Origin: Zygophlyctis sp. KS116
Lineage: Eukaryota > Fungi > Chytridiomycota
Direction of reading: 5' to 3'
Assembly (NCBI GenBank): GCA_054661495.1
Contig: BAAFSQ010000414.1
Span: 1-7,192, forward strand
DNA length: 7,192 nt
The notes below the pieces were generated by a model, which saw only the letters and a program-made list of their open reading frames with translations, was not told the DNA's origin and did no database searches. Position numbers and translations under genes: made by a program. Shown one piece after another: positions 1,134 to 7,101 of this stretch (within the stretch, counting starts at the first letter, position 1; each line of letters starts with the position of its first letter).

Positions 1134-4100
1134 ATGAAATTTTCAGAATTTATAGTCAATTTAAAGAGTCCGTCATGGTTAGATTTATCAGGATTTCTTT
1201 TGCTTTTTCCAGAATTGGATTTCTCTAGAAAGTTTGGGATTTCAGAGTCAAGTTTAAAGACTGAATTGTTTAAATTAAACTTGTTAAAAAGAGTTGATTC
1301 TAGTCAAGAGAGGGATTTTTATGAATTTATTAAAAAGTGTTTTTGTCCTTTAGAATCAGAAAGTCTCTCTGTGCAACAAGTTGGGGATTATTTGGATGAA
1401 TTAGCGTCAAAATGTAAATATTCTACATTGGAGTCTGGAAATTCAATGGTGGAAAGTAAGAGATCTAGATCAGAAATTATATTTGATTTATTCAATGTAT
1501 TTTTAAAATTATAAATTTAGGGACTGGATGGGGATGGAGCAATGTGGTTAAGTAGAATTATCTTGAAAAATCTAAAATTTAATGATCCATGGACTAGACT
1601 CTATGAATATCATCCTTGTGCAGTGATAATATTTAGGAATCAGAATTGTTTAAAGGTTTTACACAGGAATTTAAACAAAATTCATCAGAAATATACGATA
1701 CAAGAGTTGAAAAATGATAAAAGTTTGAGGATCAAGGCGTATCAGGATTATGGAAGGCCTCAAGTTGTAATTATATATTTTTAAAATAATATAGGGTGTA
1801 AAGATTTCAAATATGGAATGTGTAAGGCCAAGTAGTGTTGCTTGTGTTTTGGATAATTTAAGGCAAAAAGGAAATGATGTTGCATTTGCAGAAATTAAAT
1901 ATGATGGGGAGAGGATGCAGATTCATGTTTTAAATCAACAAGAAAGGGATAGAATTAGAATTTATTCTAAATCTGGAAGGAATTCTACAATTGATAGGAA
2001 ATATACTCATCATATTATAAATCAGACATTGGATTTATGTAACAATGATCGTGAATATAAAGTTTATTTTGGAAAAGAACCTTTAGACTCGCTAGTAAAG
2101 GTTGATGAAGTTATATTAGAAGGAGAATTATTGGTTTATAATTCAGAAACAAAGGAAATTGAACCTTTTGGTGGGATACAAGCATTTTCTCGTGGAAGTA
2201 TTATAGAGACTGACAAAAGATATGTACTCATCAAGTTTTTTGATATATTACATTTGAATGGATCGTCATTGCTAAGAATTCCATTTATTGAAAGACGAAG
2301 GATTTTAAATTCTGTAATCAAAATAATACCTACAAGAGTATAGTTATTGCAAATAATTTAAAGGCCGAAATTGGGGATTTAAAGGAATTTAAAGTTCCAA
2401 CAACACTCTCTATGGAAAGTTGTAGGCATTTATCTGATTATTTTACATCTGTACTGATGAAAAAAGAAGAAGGTTTGGTGGTTAAAGGCACACTTTCTTT
2501 ATACAGTCCTGCTGAAAGAGATGATTGGTTCAAGGTGATTATGATTTTCTAAAATTCAAGTTGAAATTGGGCTATCTCGGTTTAGGAGAAACTGCAGAGT
2601 ACTCTGTAATCGGCGGTTCTTTCAGTAGCAAGCATAATGATTTTCTGAATTTAAGTAGAGTTTGATTTTATTACTCATAATAGATGCAAAAAAATATGGA
2701 AGTATGCTGAATGTTTTTCATGTAGGCTGTCTACTAAATAAAGAAGAAGTGAATTTGAATGTAAGTATGATGAATAATTTGAAAGGGAGTTCCTGGTAGA
2801 TTTCGTCTTTTGTTTTCTTTTTCTCTTGGATTTTCAAAGGAAGAGCTCATTCAGTTTTCTCAATTTTTAAAACCTATCATGATTTCTGCAAAAAACAAAT
2901 TTCAGTCAATGGTAAGGATGTTCAGTATCTTATCTTGATAGAACGACTCGCTGCTTTCGTATAATTTCGAGTCTGATTGGTATCAGCCAGAAGTGAAAAT
3001 CGATTATTTTTTTCAATATCCCATTCCTGTAGAATTGACAGGACAAGAATTTGAAAGAAAATATCATCCGCAGACCCGCTCCTACTTTTGGAGTCTGAGG
3101 CATCCAGTTTTCACTAGACAATGTGGAACAGACAAATTGTGGATGGATACAATCTCTTTCAAAGAGCTGCAGGTTTTCATTTTTCACATTAAATTTAGAA
3201 TTTAGCGACGGATAAATCAACTGTTCGAGGAAAAACAATATCTGACATTAAATCACATATTTTCTCGGTCAACAAAGAATATCTACATCCCAACCCCCAG
3301 AAACAGCGTCAAAAGAAACTTCCATTTGCATTTGAAACTACTCATTATGTAGATTTAATCAATCAAAAATTGGCCAAGATTAGAAACCCTGGATTAAGAG
3401 GATATTTAGACTGTAATCATTTTGAATCATGCCAAACTCAATTAAATCATACTACTATTAATTATTCAGAATCTACAGTGGCAAGCTTACCGGATTCAGT
3501 AACGAATGGCGCTTTATTAGAAATCGCATGTCCTTCATCTGAAGATGGACTGAATTTACCCGATCGTTTTTCAAGCGATGATCGCGAGACTGTGGAAGTG
3601 GAATTCGTTAATTCCAATTCTGAAGAAACTATTAATCATACTAGTGATCATTTAAAGGAGTACTTGAGGAAAGAATCATGTCTTAGTATCCAATCTCTTT
3701 CAAATATGAATGATAATGACGAGAAAGAAAATATATATCTGGACATGCAAATTCATAATGAAAATAAATCCAATACTAATGCAAATATTGTACCAGAAAC
3801 CATGGTTTGGGCCGATTGGAATAATTCTGAATACTTATTTGCGGTAATACTTCATCAATGTTTATTTTAGGCGATCGTAGATTCCAGATCAGCTGATTTT
3901 GTTTTTGTATCATTTATCTCCACTGGTGAGAAATCTACTCTAATATTTATAGATAATTTTGATAATCTGCCTAAAACTTCTGTAAAAATCATGATTGAAG
4001 ATATACATCTTTTAACTATGAAAGCGGGTGAAAAGGTGTTTTGTGGAAATCCACAAATAAATTTCAAAAAAGGTCCATTTGTCATTACAAAAGTCTATCC

Positions 4101-4563
4101 AAATTGTTTCAAAATTTGGAATGGATCTTATTTTTTGATAGAAACTCTAGGAAGTATTTTTTTGTCAAAACAAGTGTTGATAAAAAATAGCAAACTCTCA
4201 AACTTTACCAAACTTTTTTCCAATTATAGTGCAACAGTTTGCTTTTCTCCTGATGGAAAGATTGGTATTTTAATTGTTCTAAATTATATAGAAAGTGAAT
4301 TATACCCTGATTCGTTTTCTGATTCTATAAACACTTTTTCTGAACGCGGCGGACTTTTAGAGGACGGGCAAGTTCTAAATGATTGCTTGAGTAAGTATGT
4401 GCGTTTATGCATTACTAATCAACCAAGCAATGGGGATATTTATAGATCAGCGTTAGTTAAAAAAAGATTAATAGTATCTTATGAATGGATCAATCATTGT
4501 GTAAAGAATGTAGGTTTTATGAATTTACCAATAGGATATTCTTATTCCCGAGTCTGTATTTAG
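1134..4563 (+). CDS. ATP-dependent DNA ligase (LIG4-related, resembling the uncharacterised fungal ligase subfamily) with C-terminal tandem Tudor and BRCT; about 1044 aa; exons 1134-1496, 1521-1766, 1795-2337, 2364-2534, 2561-2654, 2684-2760, 2786-2911, 2942-3172, 3199-3843, 3871-3925, 3953-4264, 4292-4563
   Basis: After splicing: DBD-like LLFPELDFSRKFGISESSL and AMWLSRIILKNL; motif I EIKYDGERMQIH (adenylated Lys at 1897-1899); Ia IYSKSGRNST; III ILEGELLV; IIIa FFDILHLNG; IV EEGLVVK; V WFK|LKLGY; OB fold FHVGCLLNK and motif VI SLRHPVFTR...DK. Every frame break is bridged by a 24-30 nt GT-AG intron. The 3' end is uncertain (see findings). Confidence 0.9.
1497..1520 (+). other. Intron, 24 nt, phase 0 (ligase)
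   Basis: gtattt...ataaatttag; in-frame TAA; joins DLFN|GLDGDGAMWLSRII. Confidence 0.92.
1767..1794 (+). other. Intron, 28 nt, phase 0 (ligase)
   Basis: gtaatt...aataatatag; joins GRPQV|GVKISNMECV. Confidence 0.92.
2338..2363 (+). other. Intron, 26 nt, phase 0 (ligase)
   Basis: gtatag...ataatttaaag; opens the exon carrying motif IV EEGLVVK, which is absent from the ORF track. Confidence 0.9.
2535..2560 (+). other. Intron, 26 nt, phase 0 (ligase)
   Basis: gtgatt...ctaaaattcaag; reconstitutes motif V WFK|LKLGYLGLGETAEYSVIGG. Confidence 0.93.
2655..2683 (+). other. Intron, 29 nt, phase 1 (ligase)
   Basis: gtagag...cataatag; this donor reaches the FHVGCLLNK frame, whereas the donor at 2660 runs into a stop. 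Confidence 0.85.
2761..2785 (+). other. Intron, 25 nt, phase 0 (ligase)
   Basis: Consensus gtaagt donor ...ataatttgaaag; joins EEVNLN|GVPGRFRLLF. Confidence 0.92.
2912..2941 (+). other. Intron, 30 nt, phase 0 (ligase)
   Basis: gtaagg...cttgatag; in-frame TGA; the downstream frame contains motif VI. Confidence 0.9.
3173..3198 (+). other. Intron, 26 nt, phase 0 (ligase)
   Basis: cag|gttttc...ttaaatttag; gives SFKELQ|NLA and opens a 645-nt stop-free exon. A second acceptor lies at 3205. Confidence 0.85.
3844..3870 (+). other. Intron, 27 nt, phase 0 (ligase, inside Tudor1)
   Basis: gtaata...tttattttag; the acceptor TAG is itself the in-frame stop; links ORFs 3370 and 3991, which share a frame. 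Confidence 0.92.
3926..3952 (+). other. Probable stop-free in-frame intron, 27 nt, phase 1
   Basis: gtgaga donor, ctaat branch motif, tag acceptor, typical length; not required to keep the frame. Confidence 0.75.
4207..4551 (+). other. Predicted BRCT domain within the ligase CDS
   Basis: KLFSNYSATV (beta1), FSERGGLL (GG turn), LCITNQ (beta3), IYRSALVKKRLIVSYEWINHCVK (alpha2, beta4 and WxxxC alpha3), then LPIGYS as in the 53BP1/Crb2 inter-BRCT linker. Confidence 0.85.
4265..4291 (+). other. Probable stop-free in-frame intron, 27 nt, phase 1
   Basis: gtattt...ctaaattatatag; same donor as intron 1497; removes an out-of-place hydrophobic ILIVLNYI stretch from a BRCT loop. Confidence 0.72.
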
Positions 4564-4633
4564 ATTATCAAGATTCATCTAGATACCAACACTTTTGTCC
4601 GAAAAAACAATTTTTGGTGGTTTAGGGCTGTTA

Positions 4634-6538
4634 ATGACAAAATCTATTTCACAGATTCTCAATGCTCCAGTTTTAGCCCCTCTAAAGAAAAATGTCTTTA
4701 AGATCAAGAGCGATTTCTTAAAGGATGCTTGTATATCAGTGCGATCATCTAATCAAGGACTTATTCAAAAATCAGATCTTGATTCTCAGAATAGGTTTCT
4801 CAACAAGGCTGCTATGGCTGGAAATACTGATGCATTATATGATATATTTAAAAAAACAGAAAAAAAAGATTTTAAAGTATATTCTATCATGATAAAGGGC
4901 CTCACAGTTGCTAAAGATTTGATGGGTGCATTCGCAATGTATCGAGAGATGAAGTATTTAGGCATTCAACCTAATCAAATTGTTTATACTGATCTGATCA
5001 AGGCATGTTTAAGGAATAGACAGGTTGATCGGGCTTGGAAAACTTGGGATTTTATGCGATCACATATTTCTGAACCTGATTATAAAAGTTATTCTCTAAT
5101 GATTCATGCCTGCTCTTATACTGGTGAAGTAGAAAAGGCATTTGGTCTTTTCGAAGAAATGGTAAAAAGCTTTAAAACTAATAATTGGTTAGAAGGAAAA
5201 AGGTCTTGAAATTACACCCACCACTTTATGTAGTCTTATTCAGGTCTGTGGCTCAAGAAGAGACTATTATTTAGAAAGCTTTAATTTGTTTGATCAGCTT
5301 AAGGATATCCAAGTAAAACCAAATCTTTATATTTTTAATACTCTACTTAGTGTGACTTCTAGAGAAGGGGATTACACAAGGGGTATTGCTATATGGAACG
5401 AGTTGACCGAGAACCAAGGTAAATCCTATATTTGATGATGTTAGATGTGGAAATTAATGAATATTCCTTTTCCGTGATATTTAAGACACTAGCAAGGGGT
5501 TTAGCCAAATTAAGCAGTGAGATTAAATCTCTTTCCATAAATTTAAACGCAAGTGAAAATTCTCTAGATTCATTGCCAAATAATGGTCTAAATGATATGA
5601 ATAAATCAGATAATGAAATAACAAGAGAATCAAGCACAGCGGATGACTCTATTTCATCAAATAATGTGAATGATTATCGCAGTAGTACCGATACTTCTGG
5701 AATTAATCTGGAAAATCCTGAAACCTCTACTAATCCTTTTGAAGAAACAAGAATTATATATGAAAAAGCAATAGAGATTTGGACATTGCTAAACTCTCAG
5801 TACACATCTCTTATAAATAATCATATTCTTGATACATATCTAAAAGTTTTGTGTAGTATTCCAATCACAAAGGAATCTTATGAAAATGCATTAAATTTTT
5901 ACAGAGAAAACTACTCTCAGTGTCCTGATAGCTCAAAAGGATATGGATATCTTTCACTACTAGGATATGTCATTAAAAGCCCACAAGTATTCAAAGAGCA
6001 CGGACCAACTCTTTGGAAAGAATTCTTAGACTGGGATAATACTCAAGAATCTAAACTTTTGACTAAAGGTTTAACAGAGATTGAAAAAGAAGAAATTAGA
6101 TTTACTGAAAATCGCGATAGAGATTCTATTTTGAAGGCCTTTATTTGGATGGTTAGAGGATATACTAGATCAGGCCATACTGATGATGCTCTAGAAGTAC
6201 TCAAGAGTAGTCAATCCTTTAGAAGTTTAGATTATCTTCGTCCTATATTTTTTAGAGATATTTGGGTCTTGGTCAAAAGAGCAAGAGATCAATCACAAGA
6301 TGGAAAATGGGCATTGGCTCAAGAACTCTCAGAAATTTGCTCGAGTAACAATACAGATCCTCTACAAGCTGTTCAAAAATCAATGAAACAAAGACTTATG
6401 CCTCAAAATTGGTGGGGATGGAAAGCTGTTGGTTTAGATGAAGTTGATTTGAAACATCTCCAAAAAAAGAATAAACGCATCAAACATAAAGTAAACCAAA
6501 TCTCTGGCTTAAATAAGAAACAAGAAAAACATAGATAA
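4634..6538 (+). CDS. P-type pentatricopeptide repeat protein, probably mitochondrial (possibly Ccm1-like); 615 aa from ATG 4634; exons 4634-5161, 5193-5418, 5445-6538
   Basis: Consecutive 35-aa PPR motifs: VYSIMIKGLTVAKDLMGAFAMYREMKYLGIQPNQI, VYTDLIKACLRNRQVDRAWKTWDFMRSHISEPDYK, SYSLMIHACSYTGEVEKAFGLFEEM|KEKGLEITPT, TLCSLIQVCGSRRDYYLESFNLFDQLKDIQVKPNLY, IFNTLLSVTSREGDYTRGIAIWNEL, plus distal AFIWMVRGYTRSGHTDDALEVL. The first in-frame ATG is 4634 (the ORF track's 4595 is TTG); the start is uncertain. Confidence 0.9.
5162..5192 (+). other. Intron, 31 nt, phase 0 (PPR), with NAGNAG acceptor tagaag
   Basis: gtaaaa...ctaataattggttag; restores 35-aa PPR periodicity (EEM|KEKGLEIT). Confidence 0.92.
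5419..5444 (+). other. Intron, 26 nt, phase 1 (PPR)
   Basis: gtaaat...gatgttag; in-frame TGA; joins ELTENQ-D-VEINEYSFSVIF. Confidence 0.92.
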
Positions 6539-6681: not shown

Positions 6682-7050
6682 CTAAAGACCACATTGAAAC
6701 GATGTTACCTTGTTTTTTCCTTCTCCAACTGTGAGTTCTGTAACGTAGGGACTACAGCAGTCACTTTTTTGAGATTTAGTAACAATTTTCCCGTCCTTAA
6801 TACAACCCTTACGAACACATATTTTATTCTCACAGTTGTTACCATTTTTGCATAATACACCTTTTTTTTTGTCACATGCTGCCCCAAGGTTTGCATAAGT
6901 TTTACTTCGGCATTTATCTGTACCTTCATCACAATAAAGATGATCGGCACAAGCATTTCTAGTGTCACACGATTGACCTGATTGAAGTTTTGCGTTACTT
7001 ATAGTTGCCATTTGAAGAAAAGCAATCAGAGTGAAGAGAGATAATTTCAT
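6682..7050 (-). CDS. Small secreted cysteine-rich protein, 122 aa, 12 Cys, intronless
   Basis: ATG 7050 in A-rich context starts a classical signal peptide MKLSLFTLIAFLQMATISNA. The mature part is Lys-rich, with two GxxC-C-C-C modules and a C..CC..C module. Stop TAG at 6684-6682. Confidence 0.88.
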   Translation of the reverse strand: MKLSLFTLIAFLQMATISNAKLQSGQSCDTRNACADHLYCDEGTDKCRSKTYANLGAACDKKKGVLCKNGNNCENKICVRKGCIKDGKIVTKSQKSDCCSPYVTELTVGEGKNKVTSFQCGL

Positions 7051-7101
7051 TTTTTTAAAGTTCCGAAGTCTGTCCCAGCAGCGCATGTCATCATATCGGT
7101 G

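Follow-up and report, generated by a model that had tools for sequence, protein, structure and literature searches.

The 7,192-nucleotide (nt) window analyzed here, contig BAAFSQ010000414.1 (C414) from the 12.7-Mb intron-containing genome of Zygophlyctis sp. KS116, carries on its forward strand a gene (1134..4582) predicted to join an ATP-dependent DNA ligase core to a C-terminal tail of two Tudor domains and a single BRCT domain, related to the checkpoint mediators 53BP1, Crb2 and Rad9. Our model of this gene has 13 exons and 12 GT-AG introns of 24-30 nt, and a frame check after splicing gave a single open frame from 1134 to the stop codon at 4580-4582, encoding 1042 amino acids. Splicing was deduced from the sequence and from orthologous loci, and searches were run with the individual exons of the spliced model; with tblastn, these exons match orthologous loci of other assemblies, including L039 (~92% identical over the tail), L010 (70% over the adenylation exon) and L016/L017 (60% over the same exon). 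We are highly confident of the ligase-Tudor-Tudor-BRCT architecture and of the origin that we set out below.

The 3' end of the gene contains three introns that are missed when open reading frames (ORFs) are simply read through. The first (3926..3952, 27 nt, +) lies in frame inside Tudor 1 and is 34 nt long in L016 and 26 nt in L010; the second (4265..4291, 27 nt, +), likewise in frame, measures 29 nt in the 92%-identical L039 and is absent in L016 and L035; the third (4510..4534, 25 nt, +) occupies a position common to L016, L035 and a stand-alone paralogue described below. After it comes the last exon (4535..4582, +), 15 amino acids and a stop, which resembles the paralogue's inter-BRCT linker; the protein therefore ends at 4582 and not at 4563, where an earlier note on this DNA had placed the end of the gene. 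That note had also taken a terminal LPxGYS motif as a signature of the mediators, but the motif, here LPIGYS, is intron sequence obtained by reading through 4510-4534, since L016 and L035 have their splice at this very codon, with a matching last exon behind it. A further candidate intron at 4391/4395-4427 was rejected, as this segment is coding in L016. A splice across 4556-4582 into the downstream pentatricopeptide repeat (PPR) gene, and a second BRCT domain (BRCT2) there, were also judged unlikely and discarded: two orthologues without the GT keep this stretch as conserved coding sequence, orthologous loci have no adjacent PPR gene, and a BRCT2 profile finds no match.

The first eight exons, all on the forward strand, encode the ligase core. 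Exons 1-2 (1134-1496, 1521-1766) cover the N-terminal DNA-binding domain, with a match to PF04675 (DNA_ligase_A_N) at the cut-off (E 3e-5), and exons 3-4 (1795-2337, 2364-2534) the adenylation domain, with matches to PF01068 (DNA_ligase_A_M) at E 4.6e-23 and 3.1e-6. The lysine of adenylation motif I (KxDG) is encoded at 1897-1899, and motifs III, IIIa, IV and V follow at 2119, 2236, 2469 and from 2526 on. The OB-fold region is encoded by exons 5-8 (2561-2654, 2684-2760, 2786-2911, 2942-3172), and a segment resembling motif VI lies at 3098. Pfam has no match in these four exons, and the OB assignment is made by similarity to relatives, third-family ligases (see below) matching 2561-3172 with E values down to 1e-12; the exons at 2786-3172 are 79-87% identical among orthologues, whereas the adenylation exon is 60-70% identical. 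The gene thus has the DNA-binding, adenylation and OB domains, the KxDG lysine and motifs III-VI of an ATP-dependent ligase, and, given its catalytic motifs, the core is a probable nick-sealing enzyme.

Three loci in the genome encode ATP-dependent ligases: C182 carries a Lig1-like gene, C37 a Lig4-like gene with two BRCT-like regions as read from its translations, and the third is the fusion gene. A profile search with the adenylation exon among 1.84 billion proteins returned as best relatives members of a third fungal family in chytrids and basidiomycetes. This family, which we take to be CDD model cd08039, includes the chytrids Clydaea, Lobulomyces, Chytriomyces and Physocladia among others, and ascomycete members recognized by motif; KAJ3215267.1, KAI8844085.1 and QRV88820.1 are examples of the family. 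In a quick tree, the six rows of the fusion lineage form one clade, with a Shimodaira-Hasegawa-like approximate likelihood ratio (SH-aLRT) support of 99, among chytrid-type members of the family. By its sequence, the core belongs to this third, uncharacterized family of fungal ATP-dependent ligases.

The earlier note had used Lig4 as its frame of comparison, and a variant Lig4 acting in canonical non-homologous end joining (NHEJ) would share the C-terminal position of the BRCT domain; some databases also label relatives of the gene 'DNA ligase-4'. However, a distinct Lig4-like gene with two BRCT-like regions exists in the genome, the core of the fusion gene groups with the third family, and its BRCT is single and of the Crb2/53BP1 type, where Lig4 has a BRCT on either side of an XRCC4/Lif1-binding region. 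In a PDB search, every other eukaryotic ligase matched better than Lig4 (E 4.5e-7; Lig1, 3.6e-14). We give next to no credence to a Lig4 identity. Ku70/80 and Lig4 are both present in the genome, so canonical NHEJ need not depend on the fusion gene; the search of the genome for XRCC4 was blank and is uninformative.

Many third-family ligases end in a domain of their own. This native C-terminal domain is a conserved alpha/beta unit of ~120 amino acids with an invariant Gly-Trp (P0031, P0033, P0035, P0169 and others in alignment A7); the corresponding profile matches 45 relatives, the domain not being universal in the family, and has no match in the window or in the orthologous loci. Searches of the domain against Pfam, the PDB and BRCT domains gave no match. 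Pfam analysis of the tails of 85 third-family relatives found no Tudor domain, one BRCT and one SAP; this absence of Tudor domains is a weak indication, because Pfam also misses the Tudors of the fusion gene. Profiles of the fusion tail have no match in the third-family relatives either.

The ligase core is connected to the tail by exon 9 (3199..3843, +), which encodes a post-OB segment of ~100 amino acids, a variable linker of ~90 amino acids and the first strands of Tudor 1; this domain begins at about 3787, with the codon of its cage Trp at 3817-3819. All 215 codons of this 645-nt exon are free of stops, while the other two frames contain 12 and 25 stops and none of 20,000 shuffled sequences was stop-free. 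The counterparts in L039, L010 and L016 are likewise stop-free and differ in length by up to 56 codons, and the near relative L039 differs from the window by indels of 3 and 6 nt only. Over the first 100 codons the ratio of nonsynonymous to synonymous change (pN/pS) is 0.26-0.32 against L010 and L016, which indicates purifying selection in the long frame. The proposal, in the earlier note, of a partly acidic Ser/Asn-rich linker of about 200 amino acids stands for residues ~101-190 of this stretch, which are a variable Ser/Asn/acidic linker, but not for the first ~100, which are conserved coding sequence. As a separate observation, the linker of L016 (4090-4410) contains a near-tandem duplication of about 58 amino acids.

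If an acceptor at 3205 were used instead, the ligase would end at 3352, and the Tudor-BRCT part could be a separate gene read from an internal ATG such as that at 3706, or the locus could produce a short ligase isoform. The AG at 3204-3205 occurs in the window, L039 and L010, and genes in this genome are densely packed, within tens of bases of one another, which would accommodate such an arrangement. However, L016 has no such AG, and neither L010 nor L016 has the Met at 3706. Across the first 48 codons, 21 of 33 and 22 of 35 substitutions affect third codon positions in the long frame, which stays open through a linker that varies by up to 56 codons. In L016, moreover, a single exon spans the end of the ligase into the third strand of Tudor 1. 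The fusion into one protein is well supported because the frame is open across lineages and under purifying selection, because neither the 3205 acceptor nor Met 3706 is kept, and because of this L016 exon; two genes, or a short isoform, appear very unlikely. The complete ligase core, the tiny introns and the in-frame lead into a Tudor-Tudor-BRCT block, all described in the earlier note, are thus borne out by the Pfam domains of the core, the stop-free 3199-3843 and the predicted fold of an orthologue.

The remainder of the tail is encoded by exons 10-11 (3871-3925, 3953-4264, +), which complete Tudor 1 and contain Tudor 2 (about 4012-4185) and the start of the BRCT domain (about 4213), and by exon 12 (4292..4509, +), which holds the rest of this single BRCT. 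Pfam does not detect the Tudors of these exons, and its Tudor_3 and Rad9_Rad53_bind models have no match anywhere in the genome; as Pfam is blind to the tail Tudors, the evidence for them is structural and by paralogy. A single-sequence AlphaFold prediction of 3871-4509 reached a predicted local distance difference test score (pLDDT) of only 31. The orthologue P0171, which has the whole module in one ORF and is 49% identical, was folded with a 16-row alignment; the mean pLDDT of this model is 58, with values of 60-90 over the beta part. The top Foldseek matches of the model are 53BP1 tandem Tudor structures (E 3.7e-5), and VIA-align also places 53BP1 first (Z 8.2 over 108 residues), with Crb2 at Z 6.9. 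The modeled fold identifies two Tudor barrels in the tail, kin to those of 53BP1 and Crb2; matches to fluorescent proteins in the PDB were treated as chance. In the ESM Atlas the tail reaches a Tudor_3+BRCT cluster at only 0.76. The BRCT exon matches Pfam BRCT_2 below the cut-off (E 0.005), and its best PDB match is, weakly, the first BRCT domain of 53BP1 (E 0.009). No second BRCT follows: the stop lies 15 codons after the last intron, and the BRCT2 profile has no match. The tail as a whole evolves under purifying selection (uncorrected pN/pS 0.29-0.53). A metagenome scan with the tail profile gave no matches.

The kinship with checkpoint mediators is strengthened by a gene elsewhere in the genome. 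A search with the tail profile found one paralogue, on C158 (E 2.6e-5), and hhalign relates it to the fusion tail with 97% probability (E 3.8e-11). This stand-alone Crb2/Rad9-like gene (L033:400-2259) has an N-terminal GATA-like Cys4 finger, a block homologous to the Tudor-Tudor-BRCT tail, a linker and a probable second BRCT, to which PF18428 gives a weak match in three copies (E 0.003-0.02, below the cut-off); the ESM Atlas has no match for it. The earlier note had asked whether stand-alone crb2/RAD9 and LIG4 genes exist and whether a Tudor fold is predicted; genes like both are found, on C158 and C37, as is the fold, on P0171. Two phase-0 intron positions, one inside Tudor 1 and one directly after the first BRCT domain (BRCT1), are shared by the fusion tail and the C158 gene, and the last exon of the ligase is identical to the inter-BRCT linker of the paralogue at 7 of 13 positions. 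The fusion gene and the stand-alone paralogue co-occur in two further samples. The tail is most simply explained as a copy of the 3' portion of this Crb2/Rad9-like gene that was joined to the ligase, with loss of both BRCT2 and the ligase's native tail; a duplicated Tudor-Tudor-BRCT1 piece thereby took the place of the native C-terminal domain in the common ancestor of a single small clade, chytrid-like to judge by the named relatives nearest to the ligase. The direction of the duplication is deduced from the wide occurrence of Tudor-free relatives of the ligase. As the stand-alone gene is also present, the checkpoint mediator has not been supplanted by the fusion.

The residues by which mediators recognize histone marks were compared in the tail, with the cage mapped through the structural register onto the 53BP1 sequence and PMC2034471, and the BRCT residues numbered according to their spacing in PMC4688034. 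Tudor 1 keeps aromatic residues (Trp, Phe and Phe) at the positions of 53BP1 W1495, Y1502 and F1519 but has Ser at that of D1521. In the BRCT domain, Asn (4429) and Ile (4438) stand at the positions of R1811 and K1814, with Asn/Ser and Ile/Val across copies. The D1521A substitution abolishes histone binding by 53BP1, and the Tudor of budding-yeast Rad9, which has Thr at this position, binds DNA with micromolar affinity and does not bind methylated peptides (PMC2034471); R1811 and K1814 are both needed for binding of gamma-H2AX by 53BP1 (PMC4688034). With the cage Asp and both phosphopeptide-binding basic residues replaced and BRCT2 missing, the tail is unlikely to read the classic marks, contrary to the suggestion in the earlier note that it recognizes H4K20me2 or gamma-H2A as 53BP1 and Crb2 do. 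The C158 mediator also lacks the cage Asp, the phosphate-binding Lys and usually the cage Trp, and so the checkpoint mediator of this clade may not read classic marks either.

The tail could still be a true histone-mark reader, its cage binding a methylated residue, lysine or arginine (in H3K79me, H4K20me or some other mark), so that the ligase finds marked nucleosomes alone. The cage Trp, Phe and Phe are invariant in four ligase copies, the Trp being better kept than in the stand-alone paralogue, which has Leu or Phe there; 53BP1 is the best fold match, and the genome has Dot1 and two H2A genes (L045, L046), one ending in SQEY as in metazoan H2AX and the other without an SQ motif. The Ser at the D1521 position, the Asn/Ser and Ile/Val at those of R1811 and K1814 and the lack of a second BRCT all argue against such a reader, which we regard as doubtful. 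Were it nevertheless real, this would be the first ligase with its own histone-mark reader, by which the third fungal ligase would reach marked or damaged nucleosomes independently of XRCC4/Lif1 or PCNA, a prospect to which we give a minor share of our confidence; it would also reveal the role of the whole third family.

Another possibility is that the tail is a protein-docking module that pairs with the Crb2/Rad9-like paralogue or its partners, the ligase reaching checkpoint foci indirectly. The BRCT regions of 53BP1 and Crb2 dimerize (PMC4688034), the fusion keeps BRCT1 and part of the inter-BRCT linker under selection, and the paralogue occurs in the same genomes. However, both the interaction and dimerization through a single BRCT are presumptions, and the conservation of the Tudor pair would be left unexplained; we consider docking improbable as the main function.

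We favor a third reading, at about even confidence, in which the Tudor pair is a mark-independent tether. The core, on its flexible linker, would be held to DNA or chromatin through the Tudor pair, much as the Tudor of Rad9 attaches to DNA despite lacking the cage Asp; the lone BRCT would be a protein-contact module and no gamma-H2A reader, and the fusion ligase may serve as a back-up or specialized repair ligase beside Lig1 and Lig4. This tether is favored because the cage Asp and the BRCT basic residues are replaced, BRCT2 is missing, the cage is Rad9-like and the exon of Tudor 2 encodes a basic surplus (13 K+R against 6 D+E), the paralogue's counterpart being neutral.

Several observations weigh against this interpretation of the gene. 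The motif VI-like segment has Val where the third-family consensus has Arg, and nick sealing, although probable, is a predicted activity for the family as a whole. The tree was made quickly, its outgroups are fragmentary, and its Lig1 and Lig4 rows are exon fragments of unsure placement. The joined transcript is deduced from the sequence and its orthologues, and the fold was predicted for P0171, where the BRCT mostly scores below 50. The ligase copies share an Asp two residues beyond the canonical site, through which methyl-lysine binding might be restored, and the basic surplus of Tudor 2 is small in L035 (10 against 8).

Comparison with known systems indicates what is new here. The fusion gene shares its core and motifs with the third fungal ligase family, its nearest kin by profile search and tree, but lacks the C-terminal domain of chytrid and basidiomycete members. 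Like 53BP1, Crb2 and Rad9, it combines a tandem Tudor fold with a following BRCT of their type; unlike them, it has one BRCT, replacements of the cage Asp and the phosphopeptide-binding Arg and Lys, and an N-terminal ligase. Lig4/Dnl4 likewise combines a ligase core with C-terminal BRCT domains, but the fusion belongs to another family and has a Tudor pair and no BRCT pair. Other ligases carry borrowed targeting domains, such as the PARP-type zinc finger of Lig3, and plant LIG6 is a further case; the likeness lies in a ligase core that gains an accessory domain from another repair protein. To our knowledge, no ligase of this kind carries Tudor domains. A full-text literature search found no ligase with Tudor domains, in agreement with the earlier view that the architecture had not been described, and no functional paper on the third fungal ATP-dependent ligase; a 2026 review of fungal repair names, in the part available, only Lig1/Cdc9 and Lig4.

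Taken together, the gene represents a new domain architecture, confined to a small clade, in a known but uncharacterized ligase family. The third ligase is carried by many fungi, from chytrids to molds, and the conserved joining of this ligase to part of a checkpoint mediator hints, as a Rosetta-stone fusion, that the family may act in chromatin-associated damage repair. The gene offers a compact, testable construct and a clear-cut example of domain theft, which the shared introns date and whose donor gene persists. Its reach is limited to one small uncultured clade, with a role predicted from sequence and model.

The ligase gene lies between a YIF1 gene (134-1090), with an N-terminal Gln/Gly-rich repeat and a single 26-nt intron (926-951), and the PPR gene (about 4637-6538). 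YIF1 is upstream of the ligase in most orthologous loci, and the order cyclin-YIF1-ligase is kept in L010, L013, L017 and L039; L011 instead has an upstream AAA-like ORF of 547 amino acids. The frame of the PPR gene over 4583-6538 is that of the last exon of the ligase, with one TAG between them and a likely start at ATG 4637; distant orthologous loci that extend this far do not have the gene next to the ligase. On the minus strand, 6682-7086 contains an intronless, Cys-rich ORF of 134 amino acids; its match to the EB module is weak, and with a hydrophobic N-terminal stretch after its second Met it looks like a small secreted protein.

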